From Paramoeba atlantica (taxonomy: Eukaryota; Protista; Discosea), in the NCBI GenBank assembly GCA_977017575.1, contig CDRNVI010000012.1:682001-746000 (forward strand): a stretch of DNA of 64,000 bases. The letters are read 5' to 3'. Numbering within the stretch: the stretch's first letter is position 1; every line of letters begins with the position of its first letter. The notes under the pieces are model-generated. The model made no database searches and had not been told where the DNA came from. It was given only the letters and a program-made list of their open reading frames with translations. Shown piece by piece: positions 5,431-64,000 of this stretch. The translations under genes and the position numbers were made by a program.

Positions 5431-5909
5431 AAACCACGAAATGCGGCCACCTACCAGGGCAAGCGATCACTGAGCTGTATGCAGTGGGGAAGGTATTGGG
5501 GGGAAATTTCCACTTGAAAAATAAGTTGCTCGAAAGTAATATGAGGAAATTTAAGAATGAATATAGATAAATACTTAACTAACTCTATGGAGTTAGTGTA
5601 GAGTGAGTGAGTGAGTGAGTGTGACGCAGTTCAACTTTCGAAAGCATTTACCCGGCTCCAAGCCCTGTTGAAAGACTTTAGCCTCGTAGTATCAACGCAC
5701 AAATGCTTGTGGTTTGGAGGGATGGGAAAAGTACCTATGCCTCAAGAGTTATGCGATGCAGAGGTAAGAAATGCGGAACACACATTGAAGACTTTAGGCG
5801 CATTCATTGGGGAGGACTCTAAGATCAGTGAGCAACTTCTTACTTCTCTCCAGAAACACAACGACATTTTCCGTCGTCTGAAACTCATGGGGTTAAACAA
5901 TACTTCTGC

Positions 5910-6352
5910 GAATTTTTTTTTTCTTTTTTTTTTTAAATTTTCTTTTTTTGCAATTAATAAGGGGGGGAGAAGTATGAATCGCGGCATTGCCTCTATATTT
6001 TGACCCAGTAGACGAACCAAGTAGGTCCATTGGGGGGGGGGGTATACGAGTTGAAAACAAACAATCAAATTAGCAATTCTTTTTCTGTCCACAGATGTAC
6101 CTTTTTTCTCAGCCCAAAACTAGCAATTTAGTCTCCCCTAAGTATATACTACAAACAAGAAAAACAGTAAAAATTAAAACAAGCAATCCATGCCCAATCC
6201 ATTCGCGCGTTCCGGACCGGATCTTTCGACCTCTCCACGGCCTGACTTGTGAACCCTTCCCTTGTTATATGGGAGGGCGCAGGCGCGGGCCTGTGTCGAC
6301 AGCGACACGGTCGCGAAACAGGATGCTGGCCGACGGGGAGGAGATTCACTTC
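5910..6352 (-). mobile_element. 5'-truncated copy of the CRE element 3' UTR with poly(A)
   Basis: Near-identical to 57895-58300, the 3' UTR of ORF 58456..62301; T-run at 5910-5949 is the poly(A) on the minus strand. Confidence 0.85.
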
Positions 6353-6379
6353 CTCTTTTTTTTTTTTTTTTTTTGCTTA

Positions 6380-6740
6380 GTACTTTTTTTTTTTTTTTTT
6401 GACTTTATATATGTATGTACGGTATGACTTTCTCACTTACTTTCCTACTTGCTCAACTTCTTTCCCTAACTTCCCCCCATTTTGAAAACGAGCAAAATAT
6501 AAAACTAGTAAATGCATGCTTTCCCATCTTACCCACTTCCCCTTACGAATCTTTCCAGCTTTCCAGGGAGGGTAAGGTCTCCCTCTGCTAGGAGGGGCAG
6601 ACTTTCCCCTAACCATTCGCGCGTTCCGGACCGGGTCTTTCGACCTCTCCCAGCTTGCCTTGTTAACCCTTCTCTTGTTGTACGAGAGAGCGCAAGCAAT
6701 GGGCCTGTGCCGACAATTTTTTTTTTTTTTTTTTTTTTAA
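6380..6740 (-). mobile_element. Diverged variant copy of the CRE 3' UTR module
   Basis: Contains CCATTCGCGCGTTCCGGACCGGGTCTTTCGACCTCTCC at about 6613-6650 and a pyrimidine-rich tract like 57590-57660. Confidence 0.65.
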
Positions 6741-6762
6741 ACAAAAAGGGGGTATTAAGCAA

Positions 6763-7613
6763 TTTTTTTTTTTTTTATTCTGTAATACGATCTATAACTT
6801 TTCTCTCTCCGTATCCCCCTAACGGGGATTCTGACTTTCTTCACTCACTTTTCAAATCGCGAGGAATTGGGTGGCCCGAATGTCGCTGCTGGTTGTCATC
6901 CGTTGAAGTCGTGGCGCAGAAAACCTCACGAGCGAATTCACAAATGGTCCGAGCAGAAAGAAATTTTAGAGGCTCAAGAACTATCTGCAAATCCACTGCC
7001 GAGAGATGCGGTCCGGTACATCGAGAATACACCGATTTTCGTTTCCTGAGCAGAAAAGGATTTTTGGCGCTCGAAAGAAACGCAAACATGATGTTAACCC
7101 AACGTCCCATACGCAAACTCTGCGCAGCAGCTTTACGAATTGTACCTGTCGTCACGCACGTCGACTTGTCCCTCGGCACTTCGACATCCGTTGAAATCAT
7201 AGCGCAAAGAACCCCGCAAAGAATGATTTGGCACATGGTCCGAGCAGAAAGAGATTTTAAAGGCTCAAGAACTATTTGCGACACATCCGTTGCCGAGATA
7301 TGCGAACCTGCCCACCGAGAATACACCAACGCATTCTGTTTCCTGAGCAGAAAAGGACTTTTGGCGCTCGAAAAAAACATAAACTTGATGTCATTCCAAT
7401 GACCGATCCACACAAATTGTGCAACAACTCCATGGATTTCGTCGAACAATTCCCACGTTGACGTGTCCGAAGGCACTCTACTTCCTCGAAATCCTCCACG
7501 CACTCCGATCGTCGCTTGCGGCGCCCCAGCGCCCAGGTACATAAAAGTGAAGGTTGTCAGAATAAGAAAAAGAAAATCAACAAGGTACAGAAACTGTATC
7601 TTTATCGTTAAAG
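6763..7613 (-). other. Processed retrocopy of an SL-trans-spliced, polyadenylated RNA with about 295-bp internal repeats (ORF 7542->6841, 233 aa, unknown function)
   Basis: SL at 7613->7578, ATG at 7542, stop at 6841, poly(A) at 6776->6763; four GAGC-N17-GCTC motifs. Confidence 0.75.
7578..7613 (-). other. Spliced-leader exon copy (36 nt)
   Basis: CTTTAACGATAAAGATACAGTTTCTGTACCTTGTTG, not followed by a GT intron. Confidence 0.88.
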
Positions 7614-8970
7614 AAATTGTTGTCAAAATGCGTTAACGTCCGACAAAGATATCAAATGCGGGTGCACCATCCCGATGCTTCGGAGGCATTGACAGAACGT
7701 TTTGATAAAGAGGTGGAAGACGTTCTACAATCCTGGTTCGGATCACTCACAAAGGAGCAAATAACGCAAATCAGGCTACCGGTGAAGAAAGGCGGGTTAG
7801 GTTTAACAGCGTGCCTTCCAACGAGACATGCCGCTTTTGAATCTTCATGGTTTTCGGTTTTTGAGCGCCCAAAAAATCTTTCAGCTCGGACTGAACAACG
7901 TGAAGTAAACGCAAGCGACAGCGCCCACAGCGACAAGGACAAAAACGTGCCATTCGACGAACACACAGTAGCGGCAAAACTACATACGCAGGCGTGGGAA
8001 TCTTTAACATCATCGACAGCGAATAGTGCCTCCATCCTGAAAGCGGTAAGTTACACGGGTAATGCAGAATGGGTTATGTCCAATGCAAAATTTGTGCCCT
8101 CGCATTTGTTCTCGCTTGCAATGATGCCGAGATTGGGTATTGCTCATCCGAGTCTACCTAAGCAATTGCTCTGCCCTGGTTGCAAAATGCTACTAGAATC
8201 GCAAACAATTTTAACACACATCCCCGGGTGTTCGAAGTGCCCAGGCTTAAACGCAACTACAAAACATAATTCGCTAGTCAATTTTCTTTACGAGCTCTGT
8301 TTGAAGGCAGGCATTCCATGCGAAAAAGAACCGCGTAATTTCTCGACATATGCGTGCACGCAGTGTAACCAGAAAGTGGACTCCGATTACCGGCGGACGC
8401 ATGAAAAGGTATGCGGTGGTCGTTCTTTTCGAAGATCAGGACCTGACCTTGTCGTTTTTTGGAATACAGGGGAAATTTTTTATGATTTCACCGTAATTCA
8501 TGAATTAGCGCCATCGAACCTAGGTACAAACTGTGCAAAGCTGTTTCGTGATGCCATCAAACGAAGGCATGACACTTACGTCCGACCCGGCACAATTCCT
8601 GAGGACATGTTCAGATGCATTCCAATGCTGTCAGGGGGGGCGCTTCACCACAACACGAAGTCCCTTCTGAGTGCTCTAGCAGATGCGTGCTGTCTCCCCC
8701 GGAAGCAAGTACACCTCGAATTTCAGCTCCACCTGCAAGAGTTAAATGGGGCCGTTGTGCATTCACAGCTGAGGTCTTTTCTGGAGAAGGATAAGGGTGC
8801 CGCAGAGTTGGGAATTTAGAGTTGGAGATCCATGGTCAAAAGAGAATCCGAACTTCTAATCGATATTAGAAGCTAAGTCAGACTGCATAATTTACAAAAA
8901 GGAAAACATATGATCTACTCAGTGGGTATTAAACATATTATTATAAGAGTTTTCCAAGCGCAAGAAAATA

Positions 8971-9090
8971 CTTAACAAAAGAAAGGGTCTTAACAAAAGA
9001 AAGGGTCTTAACAAAAGAAAGGGTCTTAACAAAAGAAAGGGTCTTAACAAAAGAAAGGGTCTTAACAAAAGAAAGGGTCTTAACAAAAGA
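8971..9090. repeat. 18-bp minisatellite (CTTAACAAAAGAAAGGGT)6+
   Basis: Perfect tandem units between a REL 3' UTR and an SL-capped REL element. Confidence 0.95.
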
Positions 9091-9127
9091 CTTTCATGCA
9101 AGCAATGCCAGCCACACGCAAGAAGAC

Positions 9128-9163
9128 CTTTAACGATAAAGATACAGTTTCTGTACCTTGTTG
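9128..9163 (+). other. Spliced-leader exon copy at the 5' end of REL-A
   Basis: Identical 36-mer, 22 nt upstream of ATG 9186 (MGVTTRAKAKE). Confidence 0.9.
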
Positions 9164-11607
9164 TTTTTTTTATCTCCTTACCTTTATGGGCGTGACTACT
9201 CGCGCCAAGGCAAAAGAATCGGGGGAAACCCCAATGATTTTGCCCCTTCCAGCTCGGCGGAGGAAGAAAGCACCCCCAGCGTCACCGTCCACACTCTCGG
9301 TCGCCCCTGCCCCCGACACCAGAGAAGGTTTCTACAAGCATTGCCGACGCACAGTCAACGCGAATCAAGTCACCGGGTGTGGAATTCCAGGGAAGCAAGT
9401 TGTCCTCGCAGCAAGCGCCGTCCACACCACATTCTACGCCTTCCCCGCCGAGGGCCCCAAGGCCGAGCATGCATACACTATCTCGGAGAGCGCGAGTGAA
9501 GGCGCACTCGTCTCGAATGTCGACTAGTCCCTCGCCGATATTAAACCAAATGCAAAGGGTCGGAGCGCACATGGAAAAAAAAGTCGGAGCGCACAGTATA
9601 TCGGTCACAACACTTTCATACGCTAAGGCACTTTCAAGCTCGCCCGCTAGATCGCCACGCACAGCTAGAGCAGAGGAGACAGAGGAACCAATCGACGACA
9701 TAGTTCTGCGCCCGTTGAATCCGACGGCACGGATACTCTCCGACGAAGAACTGTTCCACCAAAGGAAAGAACGCAAACAAGCTAGATGGGAATATCACGA
9801 AAAACTACGCAAAGAGAGGATAGCGAAGAATTCAGCTGCAGAGGCCATCGTTGCGCAGAGCGCTACTGAGCCACCCGTCCCATCTACTCCTCCTTTGATC
9901 CCTCCGCGGCTTCCTCCGCCACTTCCCTCGCCAACTCCAGCGATCAAATCCACGGTTACAATACCGGCTAAATTGTTTTCCAAGGATCTTCTGTCAAACA
10001 TTTTTTGTCGCCGCGCAAAAAAACACCCGGAAAGTGATACGACCGCGATACTGACCGCGATCAGCCAGGTGGAAACACCCAATACGTCAAAGGTCAACGG
10101 GATGGAGCCCCACACTCCCATGACGGGCAAGGATGACTCGTGCGAGATCGAAGAGAACCAACTGGTAAGGGAAGATCCCGCGATACACGCAGCCTCGTCA
10201 GAAACTGATCTCATAGAAACACCCCATAGAAACGCTCATCTGATAAATTCTAGCTCGCCAACGAGAACTCAGGAAATATTCCATGACTTCACCTCGCCAC
10301 CGCCAACGATTCCTTTCGACGATCGCAGCCTCGTTAAAGAGCTTATAACAAACGTATCCCCTTCGTATGATTTTCCGCTATCATCAGAAACAATTTTGAA
10401 ACACGCGAAATCGGCGAAAACGGGCGAAGAGGTCGTTGTGGCTTGGAGTTTCGACCGTCAAAACAAACTTAACATTTCATCCGGGAAGGTCTTAGGGAAG
10501 AAAGGAAGAGGAGGTGCGGCAAAAATAGCTGTGGAATATCTCGGACTTTATGGTCACCGCACCGGGGAGAGCCTTACCGGCCAACTACCCGCACATAACA
10601 ACGTCCGTATCTACAAAATTATCTGGAAGAGCGGAAAGAATGTCGAAGAAGAGCTACATAACACAGATCAGCTTAATACTACTTCTACTACGGAACAGGA
10701 TCTCGATTTCGAGCCGCTGCCCACCATGCGTACCATACCTGCCGAATATATTCCCGGAGAAGTGATGATTTTTAGAGACATACTTCGAGATTATCCCGAC
10801 AGCAATTACGAGTATCGCAATAGAATATGGCACCGTTTGATGTCTGCTACGAAACATTCCTTAGCCACAATCCGAGAAACTGCAGGCAAGAAGCGGCGGC
10901 GGAAGCCGCATCCCCATGAGGTGTCCCAGTGTTCACCTGCAGAGGAAAACCTCGAAAAGGCAGATATACGTGCGGCAAAAAAAGCTATCCGTCTTGCTTT
11001 GGAGGGTTGCACCTCCAAAGCAACAAAGGTTCTGGACATAGAGGTAAGAAAAGGTCGATTATCCGACGCTGAAACTCTTGCAAAGTTAGAGGCTCTTCAC
11101 CCACAATTGCCGTGCAGTTTCCAACTCCCCACCGATGCACCCGCTATCGCATGTGTCACATCCGTTGAATTGCGAGAAGCAGGCAGACGTCTAGCAAAGG
11201 GGGCTGCTCCAGGTCCTTCTGGCATGACGGACGGTATCCTACGCATTCTTCTCGATGACGAGACCTGTTGCTCATGCCTCTGCCACATGATGAGGGATTT
11301 GGTAAATGGAAATTATAAGTATACGTTTAGAAATTTAGGATGATTGATATAATGGCCCTTCGGGGCACATAATATTTATATTATGAGATATGATTTGTTT
11401 GTTTTGTTTATATAAGTGTACGTTTAGAAATTTAGGATGATTGATATAATGGCCCTTCGGGGCACATAATATTTATATTATGAGATATGATTTGTTTGTT
11501 TTGTTTAGAGATTTCATTTATTTAGTTTGGTATAGTGACACTCCTTCTCTAACCTTTTTATTGCGGACGCGTACTACAAGGCAGTTGCAGAAGAAAAGCT
11601 ACGGAAC

Positions 11608-19400: not shown

Positions 19401-22400
19401 ATGTAAACTGTAATGTTTAATCTGTAGAACTACAGAGCTACCGAAATATAACATCCATCATGGACAACAGAGTAAAAGACATTATCTTCACCAGTACTGT
19501 AATATCAACTTCGCGAAGTAAGTATCAAATCTATTTTATATACCTCATGAACTTTTTCCTGGAGAGAACTCCCTTCCCTCCCTTTCTCGAACGGGTGTCC
19601 ACGCGGGGAGTGGTTTGGGGGTTGGTGGGTGGGGCAAAAAGTTTCAAAGGATAAAAACGCGCTCTATTACCAGTTCACTGTATAATGCTTTGTGTCACTA
19701 TATAAACTAGTTTATGAATAACAAACGTACAATGCCCGTCGGCCAACTAACGTAAATATAATTCTCAGAAATCAAAATTTCCATTGTACAATTCTTTTCG
19801 TAAACTTTTAGTACGACAGAAGGAGGACACGAGCCCGACAAGGTCAACTCGATCGATCCGCATGCCAGACACGACGACTTAGAAAGAATTTGCTTCGACG
19901 AAGAAGTCGATTCTGGACGGCTATGCACTGAGCTTGGGTCTATGTCACCGCAGTCTCACTATCCGATTCCCGCCGATCATTTGTGGAATGCCTCGAAACA
20001 TGTCAAAAAGGGAGCGATGTGCACCATCGCATGGACATTCGATAACCGAGACCAGATCAATATATCTATTAGCAAAGTTACCAGCGTGAATAGGAGAAAA
20101 GGTGCCGCCAAATTGAACTTGCAATACAAAGGTATTGCAGGCCACAAGATCGATGAAGAATTTTTCGGAACGCTGCCACCACAAGAAACGGTTAGAGTGT
20201 ACAAAATTATATGGCACTGTACTCCACCGCCCCCAGAAACCTGTCCACCGAAGCTGAACCAGTCGATCCCGCACATTCCCAATGCAGCCCTTCCCGTCCC
20301 TGATTGGACTGACGACGATCTGGACCGCGCACCTATCCCAACATCACGAGTTATGAGGCCTGAGTTAATACCAGGCGTCATCGCCACATACCGAGAAATA
20401 ATGAGTGACTACGCGAACAGCCCTTACCCACAAAGACACAAAATCTGGCACGCGGTCCTCTCGGCCATGAAAACATCCTTAGCTACACTTCGACAACAAT
20501 CCAATCGCAACAGACGTCGGCGACCATTCCCGCCGGAGGAAACAGCGCGAGACTCAGCCCAACAGAATATGAAAGATGGGAAAGCACTTTTGGATCGTTC
20601 GAATGGAAAAGAAGACAATGGAGACGAACTTTCGGAGAACAAGGGAGACCTCACGGCTTCTGATAAACGAGCCATTAAAAGAGCAACACGGCTCGTGATA
20701 GAAGGATATGCCAGGAAAGGAGCTCAAGTGCTTGACCGCAAAATTGAGAAGCAATACTTATCCGAAGAAGAGACATTCAAGAAACTTCAAGACTTACACC
20801 CACAAAACCCATACGAACTTGATCTTCCATGTGACGCCCCCCTAATAGGCGGACTCACCCCTACTGAACTCCGCTCTGCTGGGTTGCGCCTCGCCAAAGG
20901 AGTTAGCCCCGGACCAACTGGTACGACGGACACGATAGTACGCATACTCATCGATGGCCCTGTATGCTGCGGGAGTCTTTGCCACATGATTCAGGACCTG
21001 ATCAATGGATTTCTCACTAAAGAACTGATGCGCCGATTAACACGAGCAAGGTTAATTGGTATTCCCAAGCCTGATGGAGGCATCCGCCCGATCGCAATTG
21101 GTGAAGTCCTAATGAAACTTTCTGGCTTGGTCCTTGTTCAGCGATTTGAACCCACCCTGCAACCGCTATTTGCGCCGCTCCAACAAGGAGTGCTATCTAA
21201 GTCAGGCTGCGAGAAGATTGTACATCGGCTAAACTCCCTATATCGCGACGGCTCGTGCATCCTATCCGTAGATGTAAAAACGCCTTCAACTCCCCATCGC
21301 GACCAGCCCTGGCGAAAGCCGTATATGGTCTTGCTACATTGAAACCCTTCCAGAGGTTTTTCCATGCTGAATACGCAACGGCATCTGAGTTGCTATACTA
21401 CGGAAATCAAGGTCACCATGTAGGAACAATTCCAAGCACAAATGGTGTCCGACAAGGGTCCACACTTTCATCGGTTTATTTCTGTGCCCTATTGCAACCA
21501 ATCCTTGAAACTCTGTCTGCAGAGCACCCTGATATCACAATCAACGCTTATGTCGATGATGTAACTATTGCGTCAAAAAACCCCGAGCGATTGGCCAGTG
21601 CCTTCTCCCGACTAAAAACGCTTCTAGAGGAACAAAATCTAATAGTTGCTCCCAAAAAATGTGTCTGGTTTGGCGGACTGGAAGAAGAACCATTACCACA
21701 AGAATTAGAGAGCGCCGGGGTAATCACCAAAAAAAAGCAACAAAAATCCTTGGGGCTTTCATCGGGGACGACAAATCGGTCAGCGAACGCCTAATACAGT
21801 CACTGACGAAGCACAACGACAGCTTCCGACGGCTCAAATTGATGGGGGTTAACAATGTATCGTGCAATCTGCTTTCCAGATGTATAAACGTTAGACAGGC
21901 CTACCACCTCCGTGCACACAACCCCACCGCTTCAGCTGAACTAGCGACCCGATTCGACAAAGAGGTAGAAAACGTTCTTACATCATGGTTCGGACATCTC
22001 TCGGATGAACAAATCGCGTTGCTGCGAATGCCCACAAAAAAAGGAGGACTTGGCTTGACAGACTGCTCTTCCACGCGAGAGGCCGCGTACCGCTCCTCAT
22101 GCCACTCTGTTCTTGAGCGCCCCATAAACAATTCAGCTCGGACAGATGGAATCAGGGAGCGAAATGTTGGATCAGCAGGCCACCTTCAGAGCAACATACC
22201 TCCGGTAGACGAAACCACGACGGCGGCTCAAAAGCACATCAAAATTTGGAAAAAGATGACCCGCGAGCAATCAAACATAGCGAAGGTACTCGAAAAAGTA
22301 ACACACAAAGGCAATAACGGATGGACGCACTCTGACGCGCGACTCATACCATCACACCTGTTCAGTCTCGCCGTCATGCCCCGATTGGGGATCGCTCACC

Positions 22401-23478
22401 CAGATCTGCCATCACACATCACATGCCCCGGCTGCAGAATTCTTCTTGACTCCGATTCAATCTTGACACACATCATGGGCTGTACAAAATGCGGTGGTCT
22501 CAATGCCACGACTAAACACAACACTCTGGTCAACTTCATTTACGAACTCTGTATGAAAACAGGCATTCCGTGCGAAAAGGAGCCCCGTGCACTGTCAACT
22601 TTCCGCTGCACACAATGTAACGAGATCGTTAACCCCAATCACCGAAAACTTCACGAGAAAACGTGTGGTGGGCGGTCGTTTCATCGGTCCGGTCCTGACA
22701 TTGTTATATATTGGGCAACCGGCGAGATATACTACGATCTAACAGTCATCCACGAATTGGCACCCTCAAACCTTGACACAAAGTGTGCACATTTATTCCG
22801 CGACGCCTGTCGACGAAAACATGACACATACGTCAAGACCGGGAAGATCATGGCTGAAAGCTTTCAATGTATTCCTGTCCTCTCAGGGGGTGCAATGCAT
22901 TCAAACACGAAGGCTCTTATGGATGCTCTCGCAGATGCCTGTGGAATGCAACGCAAACGCGTTTATGCCGAATTTCAGCTATTGTTGCAGGAGCTTAATG
23001 GGGCGGTAGCATATTCACAGCTGAGTCGATACCTTCGCAAGGAGGACAAAAGTCGGGAATATGCTTTCTAAAGCACGGAACAATGCGCCTTCGCCAGTGC
23101 ACTGATTTCAATTCGCTGAGAATCTAACGCTGAGAATCTAAGAACATATAATATAAGAATGAAAAAAAAACTATAAAAGTTTACGAAAAGAATTGCACAA
23201 TGGAAATTTTGATTTTACTTGAACTTGAATATCGTGAAGTTCTGCCTGATTGACATTCCATGTGCCAGGGTTGTAGTTATATTCTCACAGTAGTCAAAAA
23301 AAAATAAATTTTGAACAGATAGCCGAGGCCAGACGCAGACGGCGACGTCCACTGAAAGAAAACCTTGTGTTTCGGTTGCCGGTCACCAGAACATATCTGG
23401 CGCAATTGTCCCAAGCGCTTTAATCAGGATTTTCGCTCGGGGGTGGCTGGCCCTGCCGCAGGCAGCAAGAGTTTATGA
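16439..23478 (+). CDS. gag: YR2 gag-like ORF in two pieces (16439-17248 and 23374-23478)
   Basis: Rejoining at the duplicated TTGTGTTTC gives CFGCRSPEHIWRNC (CX2CX4HX4C) and the ending GSKSL*, matching YR3 gag GGKSL*. Confidence 0.78.
17444..17650. repeat. Two adjacent 18-bp minisatellite variants
   Basis: (GAAGACCTTTGTTTTTTT) about x4 at 17444-17517; TTAAGACAACGTTTTTTA and GTAAGACCATCGTTTTTT units at 17571-17650. Confidence 0.88.
18567..19049. mobile_element. MITE (non-autonomous DNA transposon), 483 bp
   Basis: Terminal inverted repeats GGGGGGACCTTCGATGAA(T/G)CTTCATCGAAAG; flanked by TA on both sides (or CTA if the right terminus is one C shorter); no ORF. Confidence 0.82.
19350..19810 (-). 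mobile_element. Solo YR footprint (A-spacer-B), near-identical to YR3 termini
   Basis: Matches 50297-50757 apart from a few substitutions; removal restores CAG GAA G|GT ACG in frame. Confidence 0.93.
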
Positions 23479-31197: not shown

Positions 31198-33649
31198 TCG
31201 ACTTACTTTGAATTTGAAGATACGATACCAAAAAAAAAAAAAAATGTAGCAGTGAATATCGAGAAGCACGGGCACGGTGAGCGATACGGAATTTCCTTAT
31301 GATTTATTTTGGCGGAGTAGGCACCGCTGAAATACATCAACGTGCGATTGGGTTGTAAATGGAAGTAGGACGAGCGAATGGGTGGTCCCCGCGTCACCCG
31401 TTCGCAAGCTGGGAGAGGACAGAAGTGTTGTGGGATTATTTAATTTTGTTATGTTATGACCGGTCATACAGTATTCATATGAATTTTGAATGTGCATAGA
31501 ATTGAACGTATCAAATATCAGATAGAAGAGGGGAATGAAGATATTGTTTTGCTTAGTGCTTTCTTTCTTTCTTATAATATTTATGATGCACAATTCTCAT
31601 AGTTTACGGAGAGAATTGGGCGAATAAATTATTTACGTTATACCAGTTTATCTATTGTGTGATGGCCGAGGGGCATTGTACCTGTTGTAAGAATTCAACT
31701 GATTTGATATATACACCCCCCAGATGTAACCCCATGTGTATACAGACGAATATGACGTTTGCTATGGTGATTATAAATTCAAGACTTTATTTCCTTTGTT
31801 AATTCGCGACAGTTAAAGTTTCCCCACCCGCCAAACCCCCTAACCACTCCCCGCGTCACCCGTTCGCAAGCTGGGAGAGGACAGAAGTGTTGTGGGATTA
31901 TTTAATTTTGTTATGTTATGACCGGTCATACAGTATTCATATGAATTTTGAATGTGCATAGAATTGAACGTATCAAATATCAGATAGAAGAGGGGAATGA
32001 AGATATTGTTTTGCTTAGTGCTTTCTTTCTTTCTTATAATATTTATGATGCACAATTCGGCGCATACATCGGTGATCCAGATTGTATCAGTCAGAAACTT
32101 TGTGACATTCTACAGAAGCACCAATCAGCATTTCGTAGACTAAAAAAAATGGGGATCAACAATGTGTCCACTCTACTACTATCAAAGTGCGTAAACATCA
32201 GACACCGTTACCACATTCTGGTACATGATCCACAACAAACTCTGGATATGGCCTCTGATTTCGACGCAGAAGTAAATAAAACCCTCAAGGCTTGGCTAGG
32301 CAACCTCACGGACCGACAGATATCTTGGCTACGTCTACCGACGCGCAAGGGTGGACTGGGAGTCACCCCCATCGAACCACTACGTGAATCTTCGTACAGC
32401 GCTTCAAAATTTGCTGCTCTTGAGCATCGAAAACCCTCTTCAGCTCCGGCAACCCAAACGATGAATGCGCCAACTCCGGTTGATGGTGATTCTCGCGACC
32501 CCTACATCAATTTCGATGAGCAAGCTAGTGAAGCAAAATACCACAACAAGGTCCGTCAAGCCTTAATAGAGGAAAAAACACTTGCGCCCATCATCAAACT
32601 AGCGTCTCACAAGGGTCAATACGCTTGGCTCACATCCAAAGCTCGTCTAGTGCCTAGTTCAGCATTCAAATTATCGATTATGCCGAGATTCGCACTACAC
32701 CACCCACAAATCCCGGACGATGTTCAATGCCCTGGGTGCAAAAGTCTCCTTACGTCATCTACCATACTAAATCATATCCCTGGGTGCGCAAAATGTGCAG
32801 GAGTAAATGTGACAACCAAACACCACGCCTTAGTTCGGTACATCTATGAGCTTTGCTTGAAGAGTGGCCTCACCTGTGAAAAAGAACCTCGGCAATTTTC
32901 TTCATTTCAGTGCTCCGGATGCCAGAATAGTGTAACCGAGGAAAATCTCACAGAACACCAGCGCAGCTGTCGCGGCAGTGTCCGCAGATCTGGGCCCGAC
33001 CTTATGATCTACTGGGCAGACGGTCCGATGTATTATGACCTAACTGTAGTTCACGAGTTTTCAGCAGCTCACATAAACAAAACGCCTCAAAAAATGATGA
33101 ACGAAGTCATCACGAAGAAACGCGACCGTTACGTAACTTCTGGGATGATTGCGAATGATCGTTTCATGTGTATCCCTGTCCTTTCGGGTGGAGCGCTACA
33201 TAAGTATACAAAACGTCTATTAACAGCTTTAGCAGATCGTTGCCTTATTTCACGGCAACATATATTAGAAGACTTTGCCCTGTACCTCCAAGAACTGAAC
33301 GGGAACATAGTTCTGTCGCAGATGCAAAAATATTTAACTCCCGACAAGGAAGAACAATACACCATATAAGTTCAGACAGTGGACCAAAAGAGATGATCTC
33401 CCTCTCGTTTTTAATCAGACAGGAAAATGCATGTTTGTTCTGCTATTAAAGCTAGTTTGCAAAAAAAAAACGAGAACGAAAAACTATACGAAGCCACCAA
33501 TACTGTGGAAAACAGAGTGATGCGGAACAAAAAAAAAAGTGGTGGAAAGTTGTATTCTATTCTTTTGAATACTTTATATCCTTAATGTTATGTTATGTTA
33601 TGTGTTCAGGTTAATACAAAAAAAAAGTTTATAATAATACCAAAGTGAA

Positions 33650-36378: not shown

Positions 36379-36420
36379 ATAATACCAAAGATTTCTAATA
36401 GACCGAAACTAAAAACCTGT

Positions 36421-39400
36421 TCAGAGGCCCAGTTCCTGAGATGTCTCCTGCGTTAGATAATTTTTCAGCTGGGAAAATACCACTGATCCGTTCAACTCTT
36501 GAAGGTGCAACGAAAATTCGTTCAAAGTTTTCCCTCTTTCAAGCCCACAGCAGTCCGCTAGCGTATGCAGAAGGGTCTTGAGCCCTTGATGCATGGCGCC
36601 GCCGGAGAGGACTGGGATGCATTTAAAACGTTCCTGCGGAATCATCCCCGATGCGACGTACGTATTATGTTTCCGTGCGATCGCATCCCTCATTAGGGCC
36701 CCACTCCCTCGCCGCAAGTTCGACGGCGCCAATTCATGGATTACAGTGAGGTCGTAGAAGACTTCACCGGACGCCCAATATATGACTATATCAGGTCCGG
36801 ACCGGTGAAGACTAGCATTTCGGCAGATCTGTTGGTGCTCACGTTTGCGCCAATGCGGGAACGACTCCCCGCAAGTGGAGCATTTGTAGGTCGTAAATTG
36901 TCGTGGCTCCCGCTCGCATGGTACCCCAGCCTTCATGCACAGATCGTAAATTCTACGCACCAGCGCATCATGTTTCGTCGTGGCATTGTTTCCAGAGCAC
37001 TGAACACATCCCGCTATGTGCGAGAGGGCTGACGAAGACTCAAGAATGACTCGACACCCCGGGCATTGTAAGTTTCCTGGAAGCCGCGGGTGACTGAGAC
37101 CAAGACGAGGTATAAGTGCCAAGGTGTAAAATTTGGAAGATACTAGTTTTGCGTTCGACTGTATCCACGATGAATTCCCTTTCTCGCTTGCGGCGCGCAG
37201 TAACGACGCGACATTCGGGTCTTTCGACAGCGATTCCTTAATTGATTTGTTAAGCTGTGCTTCGGTGACGAATTCGTCGTTAGGGGGGCGGATTGAATCT
37301 TCATTTCCTACCGGCGATGGGGATGTAAGGCCTGTCGCTCGAACTGAAAGTGAATTTAGTCGTTCAAAAGCGTTGTGCCTCGACGCCTCATACGCCGATT
37401 TTCGTAGAAGATCCGTGGGCGTCAGCCCTAAACCTCCACTCTTTACCGGAAGTCGTGCCCACGCGATCTGTTTCGGATTCATTTCTCCGAACCAGGTGGT
37501 CAGAACTTCTTGCACCTCTTTGTCGAAGGATTTCGCCATCTCAAAGGTTTCCTCTGGCCGATGGACTCGTATGTGGTACCTGTGTCTCACATTAACGCAT
37601 CGCGACAAGAGGAGCATCGAAATGTTATTCGCACCCATGGTTTTCAGCCGCCGGAAAAATGCCCGGTGTTTTTCAAGCTTGTTGAGAAGTAATTCGCTGA
37701 CTCTGGTTGATCCCCCTAAATAGGCTCCTAGAACTTTGACGGCTTTTTCGGCTATCTGAACACCTTCGTTGACTAGTTTCTCGGGTAGTTTGACGTTGTT
37801 TAATCCATCAAACCAAACACATTTTTGCGGCGCAAGTCGGATCGATTTACTTTCCAGGAGCTCCTTGAGACGGACGTATGCAGAGGCGATGAGATCCACA
37901 TCGTGTGAGGAGATGTTGATGTCATCGACATAAGCGTATATGTTAAGCGATGGGAATTCCTGCGCGATCGTCTCAAGAATCGGTTGAAGAAATGTACAGA
38001 AATACAACGTTGATAACGGCGACCCCTGACGCACTCCAGCCGAACTCTCGACTTTGGAGAATAATTCCCCGTTTTTGCCATAGAAGAGGAGCTCTGATGG
38101 TTCCCCATATTCAGCAACAAAAAGTCGCTGAAAGGGTCGAAGTGCGCTAAACGCGAAAATCGCTTTCGCAATGTCATCGCGTGAAGGGCTGTTAAAGGCG
38201 TTTTTCATGTCCAGAGAGAGAATGGCGTGTCCTTCCATGTACCGACGATTGAGCTCGTGCACGATAGTTTCACAGCCCGCTTGGCTCATAACCCCGTGTT
38301 GCATCGGAAGAAACAGCTTCGCGAATTTGTGTTCATGTCGAAGTATTAGGACCAGCCCCGCCAACTTCAACAGAACCTCCCCCATCGCCACAGGCCTAAC
38401 GGATTTTGATGTCTTGGGAAGTGCCACGAGACGCGCTCTCCTCAATCTACGCATGACTTCTTTGGACAGCATCCCGTTGACAAGATCACAGATCATATGA
38501 CACAGACTGGAACAACAGATCTCATCATCCAATAACAACCGAACAATGGCTTCCGTTGTACCCGAAGGTCCGGGAGCCGATCCCTTTGCTAGTCTTTTCC
38601 CTGCATCACGTAGCTCTTGCGGTGGGAGGCACGCAAACTTCGGGGCGTCTGTCGGAAGCGCGAATGAAATAGGCAACGAGGGATGCAATTTTCGCAATTG
38701 GTCCAATTTTCCTTCATCCGTCATCGTTGTAATTGCAGTTTCCTGATCTAATACTCGCGTTCCCTTCTTCGTTGCTCCTTCCAAGAGCAGTCTCGTTGCT
38801 TTCTTTATAGCCCGCAAATCACTCGCCTTTTGCTCCGCTTCACTGTTCAGAGTTGTCGTCTCCTGAATTTCAACTGGACGGCGACGACGCTTCTTTCCAA
38901 TGATGTGGCGCACTGTGGCTAAAGAGTGTTTCATTGCCGACAGAGTTCTGTTCCAAATTTGATTCCGTTGCTCGTACGAGGAACTCGCGTAGTCCCTCAT
39001 GATATCCCGATAGATCGCGACAACACAAGGTACAAACTCGGAACTAACGGACCGTAAGGTGGGCATTGGGTCGAGGTCCAAATCAGCTTCGGTGTGATCA
39101 AGATCATGTCTGTCTTTGTCTTCTGTGGAATTCGTTTCCCCCGCGTTTCTCCTTGGCTCATCAAGCCAGCGTATCGAATGTTTATCGAATGAATTCGCAC
39201 GTTGGGATTCGGCGGAATAAACCCCTCAAATTTGGTTCCAGATTTGTGCCCTTCCACGCCTTCATATGATATGGCTATTCTACCGGCTCCCGCCCGTTAT
39301 TTCATCATCATAAAGAGAAAAAGAAAAAGAAAAAGAAAATCTTAATGGATAGTTCTTGGATAGTTGGGTTGCTGTTCGTCTGTTGTAGGTGTAGATTTCT

Positions 39401-42789: not shown

Positions 42790-44520
42790 ATTCTTGATTT
42801 ATCTTGTCTCCTCGTCCTCAGGTGTCTTATGTGATTCCTCCAACGTCCCTGCAGGTGCTGGCGGTTCCATGCGTTGTGCCATCCGAGCTGAAAAGGTTTT
42901 TTGATGCTCAAAAACGGCATGTCGCGATGAAGTGTACGCAGCGTTCCGCAAGGGTTCTGTTGCTGGAATACCCAATCCACCTTTCTTTAAAGGTAGTCTT
43001 GCTATCATTTCTTGCTCTGGACTCAGAGGTCCCAACCACGATGTGACGACATTCTTGATCTCGTGGTCAAATTTTTGCGCTAGCTCAAGTGAGGCCTCTG
43101 GTTTATGTACCCGTACGTGATAACGGTGCCGAACGTTTACGCTGCGCGATAGCAAAAGCAGGGACGCGTTGTTGGCACCCATCTTTTTAAGACGTCTGAA
43201 TATCGTATGGTGTTTTTCCAGCGTTCGGATTAATTCGGATCCTATGCGCTGTTCCTCCCCAACGAATGCACCCAGTACTTTAATGACTTCGCTCTCTGTA
43301 CGCACACCTTCTTCTTTGAGTGTTGATGGAATGGGGGCGTCGCTTTTCCCTTCAAACCAGATGCATTTTTCGTTATTGAGTTGAATTCCTTTAGTGAGAA
43401 GCAGGGTTTGTAACCGGTGGTATGCCGCCTCGACCTCTTTTCCACTAGGAGAAGTGAGGCTGACGTCGTCGACGTAAGCTAGAACTTTGACGTTTGGAAA
43501 TTCCTGCGCTATGGTCTCCAACATGGGTTGCAGAAAGCAGCAAAAGAAAACCGTCGAGAGTGGGGAGCCTTGACGAACACCTGCATTGCTCTCAAGTACG
43601 CAGTACAATGTACCGGTATGTCCGTAAAAAAGAAGTTCTGAGGCTTCTTTGTATTGCGCCGCAAACACTCTTTGAAAGGGCTTCATTGTGGCGAAACCAA
43701 AGACTGCTTTTGCTATTTCGTCACGGGATGGAACGTTGAATGCGTTGCGAAAGTCGAGCGATAAAATGACGTGGCCTTGCTCATATAGATCACTGAGATT
43801 ATGTATTACGCTTTCACAACCGGATTTGGATAACACTCCTTGTTGAAGGGGCTGGAATAAGGTAGCGAGCGATGATTCGTGTCGAAGTAATAGGACGAGT
43901 TCAGCGAGTTTTAGTAGTGTTTCTCCCATGGCGATTGGACGAACTCCTCCATTTGGCTTTGGAATAGCCACCAATCGAGCTCTTTTCAATCGTCGCATAA
44001 TGTCGGTAGGCAGCACCCCGTTGACCAGATCCACTAGCATGTGGCACAAGCTTCTGCAGCATATTTCGTCGTCGATTAGCAGACGGAGAATGATTAGCAG
44101 ACGGAGAATTTTTTTTTCAGACGGAGAATGACGTCATTCATCCCGGTCGGACCTGGAGATGAACCTTTGGCCAACCGGCGACCAGCAAGTCGAAGTTCCT
44201 CGGGCGATATGCAAGCCATTGCCGGCGCATCGGGTGGCAACGTGAAGGTGCAAGGATGCTTTGGATGTAGTTTCTCCAATTTTTCCAGAATTTCCTGATC
44301 TGACGCACTTGTTGTGATCATTTCCCGGTCTAAAATTTTAGTAGCCCTGGATGTCGCACCCTCCTTTACTAGCCGCATTGCTTTCTTAATGGCTCGATTG
44401 TCACAGTTTTCTTCGTGGGTCTTGTTAGTATCGTTGCGTGATCGAAAAGGGCGATTCCTGCGTCTTCTTTCTGATTCGGCCCGTACTGTCGGATTCTGGC
44501 TCGTACGAAATCTTTGCAGC
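42790..44520 (-). pseudogene. REL-family RT fragment
   Basis: ORFs 44094..44378 and 42799..44049; RPIAMGE, GVRQGSPLS, YVDD; small tandem duplication at about 44078-44108. Confidence 0.85.
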
Positions 44521-44849: not shown

Positions 44850-46806
44850 TACATAAGAAAAAGGTCTGTTTCAAAGTAAACTTCGTAGCCTGACATCTTC
44901 GTCTTCTTTTCTTCGTCTGACGCAATCGTCTCAAAGCCTGTCGCCAATGAGAACTTGACTGCCGATAGCAACTTATGCCATATCTGGTTTTTGAGCTTTT
45001 GCGGACTATCCGCGTATTCACGCATGAGGTCTCTGAAAATTGAAATGACGCATGGAATGAATTCGGTTTCAATGGTTTTTGTCGTGGGAAGTGGTTCAAA
45101 GTCAAGGTCTTTTTTTCTCAATACCATCTTTCCACCCCCCGCACCATCGACGCCATCGCCACCTCGGGCACCCTCACCTCCGCCGTCTGCGCCGACGCCT
45201 CCGCCATCTCCGCGATCTTCGTTGCCTCCTACACCGCTCGCATTTCGAGGGCCGACGACCCTTCCGCCGACTGAAGCGCGTTCGCCGTCGCCACCTCCGC
45301 CCCTCACATTGCGGGAGCCGTCGTCCCCCCAAACGAATACACCGCGATCGGACCCGGTGTTACCACCACCATTGCCGTCTCCGACACCACTACCCTTGCC
45401 GCTGCCGACACCCCGCAAGCCTCGAATCAAAGTGATAATGCAGAAAAAGAAGCCTGAGGATCACAGGTTGCACCGAGATAAAGAACAAACAACTCTGGAA
45501 CCCTCTCGTCTGGAAACACTCGGGAAAGTTGCTGGCGTCGTCGGAAAAACCGTGTGGAAAGGTCTTCTGACACTGCACGGTTTCCCAACTGCGGAAGAAA
45601 GATTGGAGCGCGAACGAAGGCTCTCGGAGATCGAAGCTCAAGAAAAGCAATTCAGCGCCCCATCGCCCACTTCGTCGGACTTGGCTACATCCTCCGTTGT
45701 CAAAAGCATTGAGACTCCAGCGCCGAGCATGAGAGGAGAGACGAAGGAGTCAGATACACAGGATCAGACCTTTGCTGACTGTATTACGCCCGACGAAACT
45801 CGGGCTCACCCCAACTGAACCGATTCGCGAAGCAGCGTTCTTCAAATCCAAACGAGCAGCTATGGAGCGACCAATTCATCTTTCAGCTCCCGCTACTCTA
45901 ATGGATTTGCCAGCGCTGAACTCGCTCTCCAGCCAACGACCTCTCACTGATGAAGCGGTTACGGAAGAAGTCCACCACAATGCAGTGCGCGAGTCTTTGA
46001 TGAAAGACAAGGGTCAGGCTGATATCATTCGTGTGGCCAGTGCGAAAGGGAATTACAATTGGCTCACCGCTTGCACCAAATTCATTCCTTCGCGACTTTT
46101 CACGTTGGCGATAATGCCCCGTTTCGGAATAGAGCATCCGTTGCTACCATCGAAGGTACAATGTCCTGGGTGCCACGTTCTCCTCACCTCCAGCAGCGCA
46201 ATTGCTCACGTGTCCGGATGCGTTAAATGCTCTGGGATTAACGCTACCACAAAACACAACAGAATGGTGCGTCAACTCTATGCGCTATGTATTAAGGCCG
46301 GCATTCCCTGCGAGCTCGAACCTAGACAATTCGCGACATACACCTGCGGAAAGTGCGGTACCACTGTTGACGGTGAAAATAAAGCGTCACACCAAAGGAC
46401 TTGCGGATCTGGTTCATTCCACCATTCCGGGCCAGATTTAGTCATCCATTGGGCAGACGGGGACATCTTTTATGATTTTACCGTCATACACGAGCTTTCA
46501 CAATCCAACATCAAACGCAGCGGCGCAATTCTCATGCGAGACGCTATCAAGCGTAAGATTAACCGGTACGTCGTGTCGAGCTTAATTCCGAAACAGCAGT
46601 TTTTGTGCATTCCCATGCTTTCTGGAGGCGCCATGCATCCAAACACCAAGGAATTATTGTCGGCTCTTGCAGATGCATGTGGACTGGCACGCGATAAGAT
46701 TCACCAGGATTTCGCTTTGCAATTGCAAGAACTGAATGGTTCGGTCGCAATGTCTCAATTTAGGAAATACTTGGCACCGGTCGATGGAGATGAAACGGCC
46801 CTGTGA
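44850..46806. pseudogene. Mosaic of REL fragments: minus-strand DLDFEPLPT region (44850-45110), plus-strand Pro-rich N-terminus (45120-45818) and C-terminus (about 45800-46806)
   Basis: Motif matches to paralogs in this window; the internal RT is missing from the plus-strand copy. Confidence 0.75.
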
Positions 46807-47023: not shown

Positions 47024-48848
47024 TTTTTTTTTTTTTTTTTTTTTTTTGCAGTCAAAAAAGCGACACGACTGGTTTTGGAACAGCAAAGGTTCTGGAAAAG
47101 GTGTCTTACAAAGGGAATCGACTCGTTCCTTCTCCTCATTTTTCCTTCCCCCCTTCTCTCGCTTCTTTGAGAGAAAACTACAACCGCACATCTCTAACTA
47201 TATATTAAAAAACGAGTGTAAGAAATCCATTCTAAAGAAATTAAAGCTAAATCTAGAAGCCATAAGTATCCTCCTCTGTACGGGGCTCCAAGAACCGACG
47301 CAACTGGCAGTTTAACACTGCCCCATTCAATTCTTGCAAATGCAGCGCAAAGTCTCGTTCCACCGCCTGCGGATTCATGGACGATTTCTCGGCCAAAATG
47401 TGTAGTAGCTCTCTTGTGTTGGCGTGAAGTGATCCGCTTCTAAGGATGGGTAAGCACCGAAAGTTGTCCTCTCTTAATATTTTGGTCGCCACGTACTTGG
47501 TGCGTTTCCTCGTGATCGCGTCTTGGAGTGCTTTTGCTGGCTTGGTACCGAGAATGGAAGGAGCGAGCTCGTGTACGACTGTAAGGTCATAAAAGATCTC
47601 CCCTGTGGCCCAATATACTACCAAATCGGGGCCCGATCGATGCAACGCGCTGCCTTTGCACGCTGTTGCATGCTCCCTCTTTCGCTCTTCGGAAATTACC
47701 TCCGAGCACCCGAGGCACGTGTACGATGAAAACTGACGGGGCTCCCGCTCGCATGGGATACCGGCCTTCATGCAAAGGTCGTAGATGTAACGAATCAGAC
47801 AATTGTGCTTCGTAGTCGAATTCGTTCCGGTGCACCTGACGCATCCCGGCACGTGGGTGAGAGCGGTCTCGCCGTTGATTTCCGTTTTGCAGCCCGGGCA
47901 GAGAAAGGATGAAGGGAGCTCCGGGTGACAGATACCGAGCCTCGGCATCACTGCTAGGGTGTATTGTCGCGTCGGTATAAATCGTTCGGTCGCGTGCAGC
48001 CACGAGTAGCTTCCTTTCCGAGTAGTTGCCTGCATTATCTGCGCAGTTTTCTTGGTTTCACACAGACGCGTTTTTATCGCCTTGTGTACTGCTTTCTCCG
48101 CAGACTCTTCTTCCGGTACAGCGGCCACTGTTGAGGCATCGCACGTCGCGACTTGAGCTGAAAACTTTTTTTGCTGCTCTAAAGCTGCGTGATGCGAAGC
48201 GTCATATGCGGCCACTCGGATAGAGTCCGTTGAAGACAGGCCCAAACCACCCATCGACAGCGGCAAACGAGCCCACTCGACTTGATCGGATGTCAAAGGA
48301 CCAAGCCATGCTTTCAGAACGTCTTCTACCTCTGAGTCAAATTCCTTCGCCATCTCTCCAGATGCCTCCGGCGCGTGCGTTCGAATCTGGTATCTTTGTC
48401 TCACATTGACGCATTTCGACAGGATGAGGCACGAGACATTATTTGCTCCCATTCTCCGCAATCTTCTAAAAATTGTTTTATGCTTACGAAGATTCCTTAA
48501 AAGAAGATTGCTGACCCGTTCATTTTCTCCGATGTATGCCCCTAGTGCTTTCAGGGCATCTGACTCAGAATTCACCCCGGCCATCTTTAGAGTCTCTGGA
48601 ATTTCTCTACCTTCTCTCCCGCCAAACCACACACATTTTCTGTTAGCGAGTTGTACATCTCTCTCGCCCAAAAGGTCCCACAGTCTATAGAACGCTTTCG
48701 TCAAAAGATCCGCGTCGTCGGACACCAGATTTATGTCATCGATATAGGCAAAAATTTTCAGCGTTGGGTATTCAAGAGCCAATGTTGCGAGCATTGGCTG
48801 CATGAAGGTGCAGAAAAGAAAGCTGGAAAGCGGCGACCCCTGCCGCAC
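47024..48848 (-). mobile_element. 5'-truncated REL element (ORF 47253..48848) with 3' UTR and poly(A)
   Basis: RQGSPLS, YIDD, RSGPDLVVYW..YDLTVVHEL; T-run at 47024-47047. Confidence 0.88.
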
Positions 48849-57150: not shown

Positions 57151-57230
57151 TCTTAACAAAAGAAAGGGTCTTAACAAAAGAAAGGGTCTTAACAAAAGAA
57201 AGGGTCTAACAAAAGAAAAGGTCTTAAAAA
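57150..57230. repeat. 18-bp minisatellite, about four units (degenerate at the right end)
   Basis: CTTAACAAAAGAAAGGGT repeats. Confidence 0.9.
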
Positions 57231-57244
57231 GAACCTGAGCCAAG

Positions 57245-62332: not shown

Positions 62333-64000
62333 GTTTTTTTTTTTTTTTTTTAGCCCGTGGAGCGCATATATTATATACGCGCCGATTACTATCAAATGTG
62401 AGACATGTTCACCTTCCCCCCTTCTCTCAATTTTCAAAGAGAAACTATCCCGAAAATGAAATCTATATATTTTTATAAGCTGACTCAGCTTATAGTGATA
62501 TTGTGTTTAGAACTTATATACTATATTCTTGAGTTTGCGTGCAGCCGTCTAAGTATTTCTTTAGCTGCGCATAAATCCCTAATCCATTAAGCTCCTGAAT
62601 CGTCAGCTTCATTTCGAGTTCGACCTGTTTCCTGTTTAGCATGGCCGCGTCTGCTAGCGAGTGTACCAAGTTCTGCGTATTGCGGTGCAAAGCGCCTCCT
62701 GCCAGTACGGGTAAACATTGAAATGAGTCTTCACGAATTAAGTTCGTACGTACATATGTGTTGGACTTTCGCTGCAGCGCGTCATTCATGAGCTGTGTGC
62801 ATTTCTTTCCACGATTAGACATTGAGAGTTCGTGAATAACTGTCAGATCATAGAAGACCGCACCCGTGTTCCAATAGATCACGAGATCGGGGCCAGACCG
62901 ACAAAGTTTTTTTCCTGCACAAGTCTTCTGATGTACCAACTGGTTTTCCGGACTGATTGTGGATCGGCAAGCGATGCACTTCCACGTAGAAAAGTTTCTA
63001 GGTTCCGTTTCACATGGGATGCCTGCTTTCACGCATAGACGATGTAAAAATCCGACAAGTGAGTTATGTTTCACGGTCGTATTTATACCTGAACATTGAG
63101 CACAGCCTGGGATATGGGTGAGGGCGTTTCGGTTATTGAGGAGAATACCGCACCCTGGACACAATAGACTGGTAGGTAGATCTGGGTGTTGGGCATTTAG
63201 TCGTGGCATAATCGCGAGTTTGAAGAGATGGGAAGGGATGTACTTCGCGTTGGAAAGGATCCAGTCGCTGTTTCCTTTGAAGGATGTGGCTTGTAGAATG
63301 GGCTTAATGTCGGGATCCGTTTGCAACTCTTTCAATACTTCGACATGATGAATGCTGGTGGAAGTTTTTTTGTCCACTGGTATGACTTTCATTGTCGAGT
63401 TCTTAGGAATAGACGGGTGTGATGGCACCGCGTTGTCGATCCGAGCTGAAAAAGAGTTTCGGCGCTCAAGAACCGAGTAGCGGGATGCCACATATGCCGT
63501 CTCCCTAAGGGGACTGCTCGCTGTCAAACCCATTCCTCCCTTCTTAACGGGTAATCGTACAATTTTCATTTGATCAGGAGAGAGTGGACCAATCCAAGTC
63601 TCTACCACATTTTCAACCTCTTGATCGAATTGTGATGATGCTTTCTCTGTTGTTTCGGGCGGGTGAACACGAATCAGGTATTGTTGACGAACATTGGCAC
63701 ATTTTGCTAAAAGAATCATCGATATATTATTGATGCCCATTCGTTTTAGCCGCCGAAAAGCTGTGACCTGCTTCTCTAGTTGACGCAAAAGTCGTTCACT
63801 TATTGTGTTGTTTTCTCCAATATACGCTCCGAGTACTTTGACCGCTTCGTCCTCCGACTTTACACCTTGGGTGCTCAGCGAATTCGGTATGGAATTTCCG
63901 GATTTTCCTCTGAACCAAACGCATTTTGCCTCGGCTAGTTTCACCTGTTTTTCTTCTAGGAGACCTTGGAGCCTAAAGAATGCTTTCTCCAGTTCGGTTG
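62333..64000 (-). mobile_element. REL-family element running off the window (ORF 62514..63944), with 3' UTR and poly(A)
   Basis: KVLGAYIG, GGMGL, RSGPDLVIYW..YDLTVIHEL; T-run at 62334-62351; terminal 50 nt shared with 40567-40615. Confidence 0.88.

Follow-up and report, generated by a model that had tools for sequence, protein, structure and literature searches.

The DNA analysed here, referred to below as the window, is a 64-kb stretch of nested retroelements of Paramoeba atlantica (contig CDRNVI010000012.1). It holds ten copies of a family of retrotransposons without long terminal repeats (non-LTR retrotransposons) that encode a restriction-like endonuclease (RLE) and are named REL elements hereafter. 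Within their open reading frame (ORF), at one homologous codon position, nine of these copies carry the inverted repeat GAGC-N17-GCTC and the tenth a compensated form, GAAC/GTTC. We observed that this repeat is the apical clamp of a longer hairpin of the sense strand, of about 45 nt and 12-13 bp. The hairpins are listed below with the scores given by a covariance model, R1, which was built from 32 REL hairpins and run over 275 kb; "fold" marks the entries that rest on a single fold as well.

7852..7896, plus strand: hairpin of REL copy 1; fold, -11.2 kcal/mol; R1 match at 7850-7898, 47.2 bits
7852-7860, 7861-7862 and 7863-7866: 5' arm, bulge and GAGC of this hairpin
7867-7883, 7884-7887 and 7888-7896: loop, GCTC and 3' arm of this hairpin
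5630..8819, plus strand: REL copy 1 itself, 5'-truncated and split into 5630-5907 and 7613-8819 (tblastn)
22102..22150, plus strand: hairpin of REL copy 21737-23071; R1, 45.7 bits
29182..29230, plus strand: hairpin of ORF 27419-30154 (911 aa), the longest REL ORF in the window; R1, 39.6 bits; fold
32409..32457, plus strand: hairpin of REL copy 32056-33369; R1, 45.1 bits; fold
37330..37378, minus strand: hairpin with the compensated GAAC/GTTC clamp, REL ORF 36421-39081; R1; fold
42874..42922, minus strand: hairpin of REL copy 42811-44073; R1, 51.7 bits, the best match
45852..45900, plus strand: hairpin of REL copy 45784-46806; R1, 37.8 bits
48144..48192, minus strand: hairpin of REL copy 47253-48881; R1, 42.6 bits
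56602..56650, minus strand: hairpin of the diverged subfamily (DEHFNPYEAP), REL copy 55702-57270; R1, 40.3 bits; fold, -11.4 kcal/mol, z = -3.85
63432..63480, minus strand: hairpin of REL copy 62514-63992; R1, 48.7 bits
7581, 9144, 33649, 33684, 49181 and 62299: six copies of the 3' part of a spliced leader (ACAGTTTCTGTACCTTG), located at the 5' ends of retroelements that belong to different classes

The motif-bearing ORFs belong to RLE-type non-LTR retrotransposons with an R2-like architecture. The Pfam domain RVT_1, characteristic of reverse transcriptases (RTs), is found in the two longest ORFs (E = 1e-22 and 3e-21), at residues 241-445 in the 911-aa one. The C-terminal half contains an invariant CCHC knuckle (C238, C241, H253 and C257 in alignment A3), followed in the same alignment by the near-invariant residues P328-D329, D342 and K369, which constitute the PD-(D/E)xK motif of restriction-like endonucleases. 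A sequence search of the PDB matches only the palm of LINE-1 ORF2p, and a comparison of folds was therefore needed to see R2. When the AlphaFold (AF2) model of the C-terminal half (predicted local distance difference test, pLDDT, 83; predicted template modelling score, pTM, 0.80) was compared with the PDB by Foldseek, the top seven matches were all R2 proteins, with E values from 1.6e-8 to 2.4e-7 over about 440-510 columns; PDB 8iby, "R2 with 5'ORF", is among the structural matches.

The copies share 44-55% amino-acid identity among themselves and 32-34% with one diverged subfamily (tblastn), a divergence at which synonymous sites are expected to be saturated. Many of them are 5'-truncated, and their 3' untranslated regions (UTRs) are short and not conserved, with short A-runs at the end in several copies. 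Such 5' truncations and A-rich 3' ends are typical of target-primed reverse transcription. In addition, a kinetoplastid-like spliced leader (...ACAGTTTCTGTAC...) heads several classes of elements. Since spliced leaders stand at the heads and short A-runs at the ends, the copies are retrotransposed trans-spliced and polyadenylated mRNAs. The leader copies at 33649 (minus strand) and 33684 (plus strand) face each other. Unlike those of the other copies, the 3' UTR of ORF 36421-39081 (window 36330-36400, minus strand) ends in a (GAT)7 microsatellite and not in an A-run.

The pattern GAGC-N17-GCTC has 13 matches in the window where 0.66 are expected, and none of 100 shuffled sequences reaches 13. 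All nine exact sites reported in an earlier note on this DNA were found again, at 7863, 22115, 29195, 32422, 45865, 42885, 48155, 56613 and 63443, and four further ones were added at 6951, 7048, 7242 and 7345, in a minus-strand retrocopy. The pattern is its own reverse complement and a pattern search gives no strand; translation confirmed the coding strands previously assigned to the copies. The tenth copy (37341-37365, minus strand) indeed reads GAAC-N17-GTTC, with Glu encoded by GAA and with Val (GTT) in the place of Ala. In the motif, GAG encodes Glu and the next C opens a codon for Arg, His or Gln, while GCT encodes Ala and the last C opens a codon for Arg, Pro or Gln; the encoded peptide is L/F-E-[RHQ]-x4-S-A-[RPQ].

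We then considered codon choice within this peptide. The REL copies were pulled out by protein homology and not by the motif; outside the window, they come from 11 loci (numbered with an L below) of about 210 kb, fetched through 12 database proteins that all belong to one ENA assembly. In the ten window copies, 152 columns with a conserved degenerate residue were compared with the family-wide codon usage, and the top three codon-conserved columns of the whole alignment all lie within the motif. Ala is encoded by GCT in 9 of 9 cases (background 0.22, p = 1e-6), the Ser that precedes it by TCA in 8 of 9 (background 0.22, p = 4e-5) and Glu by GAG in 9 of 10 (background 0.42, p = 2e-3). The larger set, 29 copies from the window and the 11 loci with less than 95% nucleotide identity, provides 43 conserved columns, among which GCT (26/26, background 0.26, p = 5e-16) and GAG (25/28, p = 3e-7) lead by many orders of magnitude, the next-best column having p = 3e-3. 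The other columns have the same phylogeny and thus serve as a control for relatedness. The fixation of GAG and GCT despite diverged surroundings is therefore as it had been described, and neither background-like usage nor frequent unpaired variants were found in the 29 copies. The three copies with GAA are exactly the three with GTT opposite, and no half-changed copy was found. In a maximum-likelihood tree these GAAC/GTTC copies fall in two separate clades (support 96/80 and 98/98), so the double change from G-C to A-U occurred twice independently.

The earlier proposal of a stem with covariation is right in that true compensatory covariation exists on the sense strand, but the structure is a bulged hairpin of about 45 nt and not a stem of 4 bp. 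A lower stem of 8-9 bp, whose sequence is free and covaries, is separated on the 5' side from the GAGC/GCUC clamp by two bulged nucleotides; above the clamp is a loop of 17 nt, the core of which, AAA(A)YCC, is kept in all versions of the hairpin. Run independently on an ungapped 85-column alignment of 32 distinct REL hairpin copies (A1), RNAalifold pairs columns 21-28 with 56-63 (8 bp) and 31-34 with 52-55, leaving the same bulge, clamp and 17-nt loop. Standard pairs occupy 87% of the helix cells in these 32 copies. For the whole tested structure, including a weak inner helix, 81% of the cells are paired in the true register versus 26-41% after the 3' partners have been shifted by 1-3 columns. 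Changes on both sides are seen in 13 of its 17 pairs, and compensatory (double-changed) cells number 100 versus 35.5 ± 6.3 in shuffles. With 49 distinct hairpins, 88% of the cells are paired versus 27-40% after sliding, 142 cells are compensatory and the covariation score is reached by none of 500 shuffles. The changes on both sides, in 10-13 pairs, are those expected of a cis-acting RNA, and synonymous-site constraint is present in the codons that it overlaps. Folded singly, each of 31 hairpins has the clamp together with the large loop, and a lower stem that is paired; the 2-nt bulge is seen in nearly all of them, and the energies range from -5 to -18 kcal/mol. The hairpin is thus a modular, sense-strand structure under strong purifying and compensatory selection.

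Two further suggestions did not hold. The helix formerly seen inside the clamp, an A-run facing a T-run and said to be swapped for TTCA/TGAA in the diverged subfamily, has 62% of its cells paired, is not predicted by RNAalifold and is not kept in that subfamily. The hexamer TTTCAG was considered as an internal trans-splice acceptor and rejected, the diverged subfamily having AACGCTC at this place and the hairpin carriers described below, as well as one REL copy, having TTTCTGCTC, which contains no AG. In Rfam, no match was obtained at E up to 1 over window 6700-8000.

In duplex DNA, GAGC-N17-GCTC is a perfect inverted repeat, which could speak for a signal at the DNA level: a palindrome bound by a protein or targeted by an endonuclease, a cruciform, or a hairpin of single-stranded cDNA for second-strand priming. 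Two nested insertions or truncations located 20-50 nt upstream of hairpins would also fit such a signal. In one of them (L006:5209-6361 versus window 29143-29154), a 1.15-kb insertion interrupts another copy of the 911-aa element at 41-52 nt ahead of GAGC, and about 12 nt are duplicated; in the other (L009:13137-13171, junction at 13149), a 5'-truncated REL copy begins 22 nt before GAGC, immediately behind the poly(A) of the element in front of it. With n = 2, these junctions may be due to chance. The lower stem covaries without any conservation of sequence, and recognition of duplex DNA would not select for this. In addition, G.U and U.G oppositions amount to 51 versus 18 for A.C and C.A, an excess from which it follows that only the coding strand folds well; this argues against a duplex-DNA site and excludes a cruciform or a minus-strand cDNA. 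R1 matches one strand only, as the bulge and the loop lack symmetry and are specific to one orientation. We consequently regard an explanation at the DNA level as very improbable.

At E up to 1e-3, R1 gives 72 matches in the 275 kb, about a third of which lie outside REL ORFs. The latter belong to at least five unrelated kinds of retrocopy with 2 to about 23 hairpins each, which we call carriers:

Window, 7613 to 6763, minus strand: four hairpins in two 300-nt repeats, between a spliced leader and poly(A); inserted in REL copy 1
Window, 7334-7382, 7231-7279, 7037-7085 and 6940-6988, minus strand: the four hairpins of this retrocopy (R1)
L008, 18890 to 15575, minus strand: 5'-truncated spliced leader, ATG, about 23 repeats of 132 nt with one hairpin each, poly(A)
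L004, 2015 to 1450: full spliced leader, three hairpins
L009, 17427-17850 (the same element as L003 9180-9400): spliced-leader tail, two hairpins of the diverged-subfamily flavour
L011, 14700-15400: 210-nt repeats, N18 loop

The window retrocopy has a 261-aa ORF that is unrelated to the REL ORF and reads two of the four hairpins in another frame. A second copy with 99% identity and different flanks is present at L003:358-1158. In the public run X2, a contig goes straight from position 5907 to 7613, with 2 letters added between them, and so represents REL copy 1 in its uninterrupted form, as an empty site. Block 5908-7612 is therefore an insertion; it includes the hairpin retrocopy, whose spliced leader borders on 7612. 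In L008, the 132-nt (44-aa) repeats preserve the frame and an open frame runs through the array, with products of 452 aa and 197 aa called; it may be a real repeat protein or merely a stop-free repeat.

The carriers share with the REL elements only about 27 nt, corresponding to the hairpin core. Their reading frames at the hairpin differ from that of REL (e.g. SSAKSPFLL, ILSLENPLLLG), and all their hairpins fold to the REL architecture, in the same two flavours as those of the two REL subfamilies. Where a spliced-leader head is present, the hairpins are always in its sense orientation; a head was found in all four carriers, of the five, whose 5' end was examined, and poly(A) in both of those whose 3' end was examined. 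One and the same signal is hence shared by autonomous elements and by five kinds of otherwise unrelated retrotransposed RNAs. Reverse transcription starts at the 3' end, and neither REL elements nor carriers have the signal there: the carrier hairpins lie at least 150-180 nt from the poly(A), and those of REL elements are found upstream of the stop codon and poly(A), at a distance of about 1 kb.

Its position is the same in all REL lineages. The earlier note had placed it in the region coding for the RT thumb; according to the AF2 model it is not inside the thumb, and the location should be corrected to the thumb-to-linker boundary. In this model Glu133 of the modelled fragment stands at the end of the last thumb helix (residues 116-137) and residues 135-160 are disordered, so the codons for the end of the helix would contain the 5' arm and clamp, and those for the first part of a hypervariable linker would contain the loop and 3' arm. 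As modelled, this linker is free to evolve a complement to the 5' arm.

In an exhaustive profile search of 1.8 billion proteins (2665 matches), distant RT relatives keep the upstream motif GGLGxT..AY.AS but not the peptide E..SA[RQP], which suggests that RNA rather than protein fixes these residues. A distant RLE family with about 25% identity (window 58456-62301, minus strand; L002:1400-1484; L002:5541-5625; L009:1046-1130) has no GAGC/GCTC at the homologous spot. Among the few sequences of this family, a stem of 5-6 bp in the register of the lower stem is possible in two of three copies (TTCGC/GCGAA versus TTTGC/GCAGA).

Within the REL family the peptide LE[RHQ]xxxxSA[RQP] is conserved, and the motif could then be explained without any function, by amino-acid conservation with codon bias or by shared descent. 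We find this hardly credible, and rejected it on the codon columns and the slid-partner controls: the codons of the other conserved columns, whose phylogeny is the same, are not fixed in this way, and pairing drops when the partners are slid. Moreover, the motif is kept in other frames and outside ORFs, and the peptide is not conserved in the more distant relatives.

What, then, would the hairpin do? That a cis-acting RNA element resides in the ORF, as formerly suggested, is borne out by its structure, covariation and sense-strand folding. Among the functions put forward for it, RT docking with template selection is the best supported, because the hairpin recurs in unrelated retrocopies headed by the spliced leader. 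All mRNAs in this system would carry the same spliced leader and poly(A). As their ends would be identical and the element UTRs are not conserved, we propose the internal hairpin as the template tag. The RT, or its ribonucleoprotein, would recognise the hairpin and so pick its own mRNA for target-primed reverse transcription; non-autonomous RNAs, capped by the spliced leader, polyadenylated and provided with 2 to about 23 hairpins, would hijack the same machinery, as short interspersed elements (SINEs) do with stringent long interspersed elements (LINEs). On balance, the hairpin is probably such a cis-acting tag for the RT of the element, exploited by non-autonomous partners. It would accordingly be bound by a protein, specifically the RT of the element, and be needed for retrotransposition.

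Several points weigh against this proposal. Some single hairpins are no stabler than shuffled sequence (z = -0.6 to +0.4), which means that a protein partner would be needed. A position about 1 kb from the 3' end is unlike that of known LINE template signals, and the hairpin alone cannot place the RT on the poly(A). All hairpin-bearing copies come from one organism and assembly; a scan of JGI metagenome contigs found no REL relatives, and a sister-family locus (L012, contig of JGI metagenome 3300045717, 59% GC) is without an R1-type hairpin. The public runs X1-X3 behave as DNA, with repeat-depth peaks and contigs spanning insertion junctions, and give no information on transcript ends, while the RNA-labelled run X5 yields the spliced leader only.

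The carriers could instead share a site for a host factor. In this case a host RNA-binding protein would act on stability, export or nuclear import, localisation or translation, and would help expression rather than the choice of template. An invariant clamp with a conserved loop core is typical of protein-bound hairpins, and gene control is post-transcriptional in organisms with spliced leaders; in addition, the ORF with up to about 23 hairpins in frame-preserving 132-nt repeats could be a real gene. What stands in the way is that the hairpin tracks retrotransposed RNAs, the carriers examined being headed by the spliced leader and ended by poly(A), and that its two flavours follow the two RT subfamilies, as co-evolution with the RT predicts and a single host factor does not. 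We therefore consider a host-protein site unlikely, although it deserves to be kept in mind.

Another possibility is a translational pause or a co-translational capture, where the ribosome is slowed, or the hairpin refolds behind it, and the fresh RT binds its own mRNA (cis-preference). The hairpin, at its fixed position in all REL lineages, comes in the AF2 model after the thumb sequence and before a disordered linker of about 26 residues, approximately one exit-tunnel length. As a sole role this is poorly compatible with the carriers, which have the hairpin in other frames, in arrays and with no RT domain upstream, and the stems are modest (-5 to -18 kcal/mol); we judge it decidedly improbable. 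The modelled placement at the thumb/linker boundary nonetheless suggests, speculatively, a variant of the template-tag proposal with co-translational capture. In this variant the hairpin would be the physical basis of cis-preference, refolding behind the ribosome as the RT thumb emerges and being captured there, and the RNAs with hairpin arrays would be specialised parasites that outcompete it through multivalency. We give this extended version a small chance only, somewhat better than that of a pause or capture acting alone.

Known non-LTR proteins choose their templates by 3' UTR stem-loops (stringent LINEs), by poly(A) and cis-preference (L1), or by RNAs of the 3' UTR and of the 5' part of the ORF (R2). 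The earlier note held that REL elements use signals of the UTRs only and that an internal one would be new. This premise is inaccurate, since R2 of Bombyx has a protein-binding RNA of 323 nt within its 5' coding region (PMC2346776; bioRxiv 10.1101/2023.04.07.536001), and an ORF-internal signal is consequently not a new principle. R2 and the REL elements belong to the same element superfamily, the predicted half with thumb, linker, zinc knuckle and RLE matches R2 proteins, and in both cases an RNA structure overlaps codons, with protein and RNA constraints superposed. However, the 5' RNA of R2 forms a large domain with pseudoknots, lies close to the beginning of the ORF and controls second-strand cleavage, whereas the Paramoeba RNA is a single 45-nt bulged hairpin at the thumb/linker, some 1 kb away from the 3' end. 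R2 is specific for ribosomal DNA and processed by a ribozyme, while the Paramoeba elements are capped by a spliced leader and polyadenylated, and no sequence or Rfam similarity exists between the R2 RNAs and the hairpin. Arrays of the R2 5' RNA are not known to us from any non-autonomous partner. New here are the form of the signal (a single bulged hairpin of 45 nt with an invariant clamp), its place at the thumb/linker, the context of spliced leader and poly(A), and the carriers with multiple hairpins.

The stem-loops of stringent LINE 3' tails, such as those of eel UnaL2 with UnaSINE1 and of zebrafish ZfL2, require both stem and loop for recognition by the LINE protein and are shared by SINEs (PMC1636434; PMC4176376). 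The case presented here resembles them in having a short hairpin common to elements and carriers, in two matching flavours. It differs in that their signals are in the 3' UTR, by the start of reverse transcription, whereas the REL hairpin is internal to the ORF and repeated up to about 23 times in carriers; in that their LINEs have APE endonucleases and the REL family an RLE; and in that the function of the UnaL2 signal was demonstrated by assay, that of the REL hairpin being proposed from comparison.

The CRE, SLACS and CZAR elements of trypanosomatids are RLE-bearing non-LTR elements of Euglenozoa associated with the spliced leader. The Paramoeba elements are like them in these features, and the likeness concerns features only, not placement in a clade. 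CRE, SLACS and CZAR insert into spliced-leader RNA genes, whereas here copies that are dispersed and nested have the leader at their 5' end, which is what retrotransposition of trans-spliced mRNA would be expected to give. To our knowledge, no internal hairpin has been reported in their clade.

The choice of template RNA by the proteins of non-LTR retrotransposons is so far understood only in part. To the known cases ours adds a compact and strongly covarying hairpin in coding sequence, at a fixed domain boundary, kept across lineages that have lost nearly all similarity at synonymous sites. The unrelated retrotransposed RNAs that bear only this hairpin, in arrays, are natural experiments. For an RLE-type RT, the hairpin would be a minimal recognition module that can be tested; enzymes of this kind are under development as gene-insertion tools, for which short template tags are valuable. 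The case also indicates that RNA structure can dictate a protein motif, E..SA[RQP] being conserved only where the hairpin exists. If the reading by cis-preference were true, this would be a new, ORF-internal way of selecting the template for non-LTR elements of organisms in which the 5' and 3' ends of all mRNAs are identical.

Some minor observations were made in addition. The sister RLE element of L012 (P0027, 977 aa), which comes from another organism, is preceded by an upstream ORF with an RNase H domain, and its homologous region contains a GC-rich hairpin (-32 kcal/mol) in this one sequence. In the window, repeats present in very many copies show up as depth peaks at 5972-6343, 6592-6715, 7584-7707 and 8948-9195. 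Finally, codon fixation second only to that of the hairpin is seen at a Gln (CAG, 8/9) with a Leu (CTG) behind it, at columns 699-700 of the REL ORF alignment; this site belongs to the C-terminal LQELNG motif near the 3' end of the ORF (e.g. near window 30050) and may represent a second constraint at the nucleotide level.

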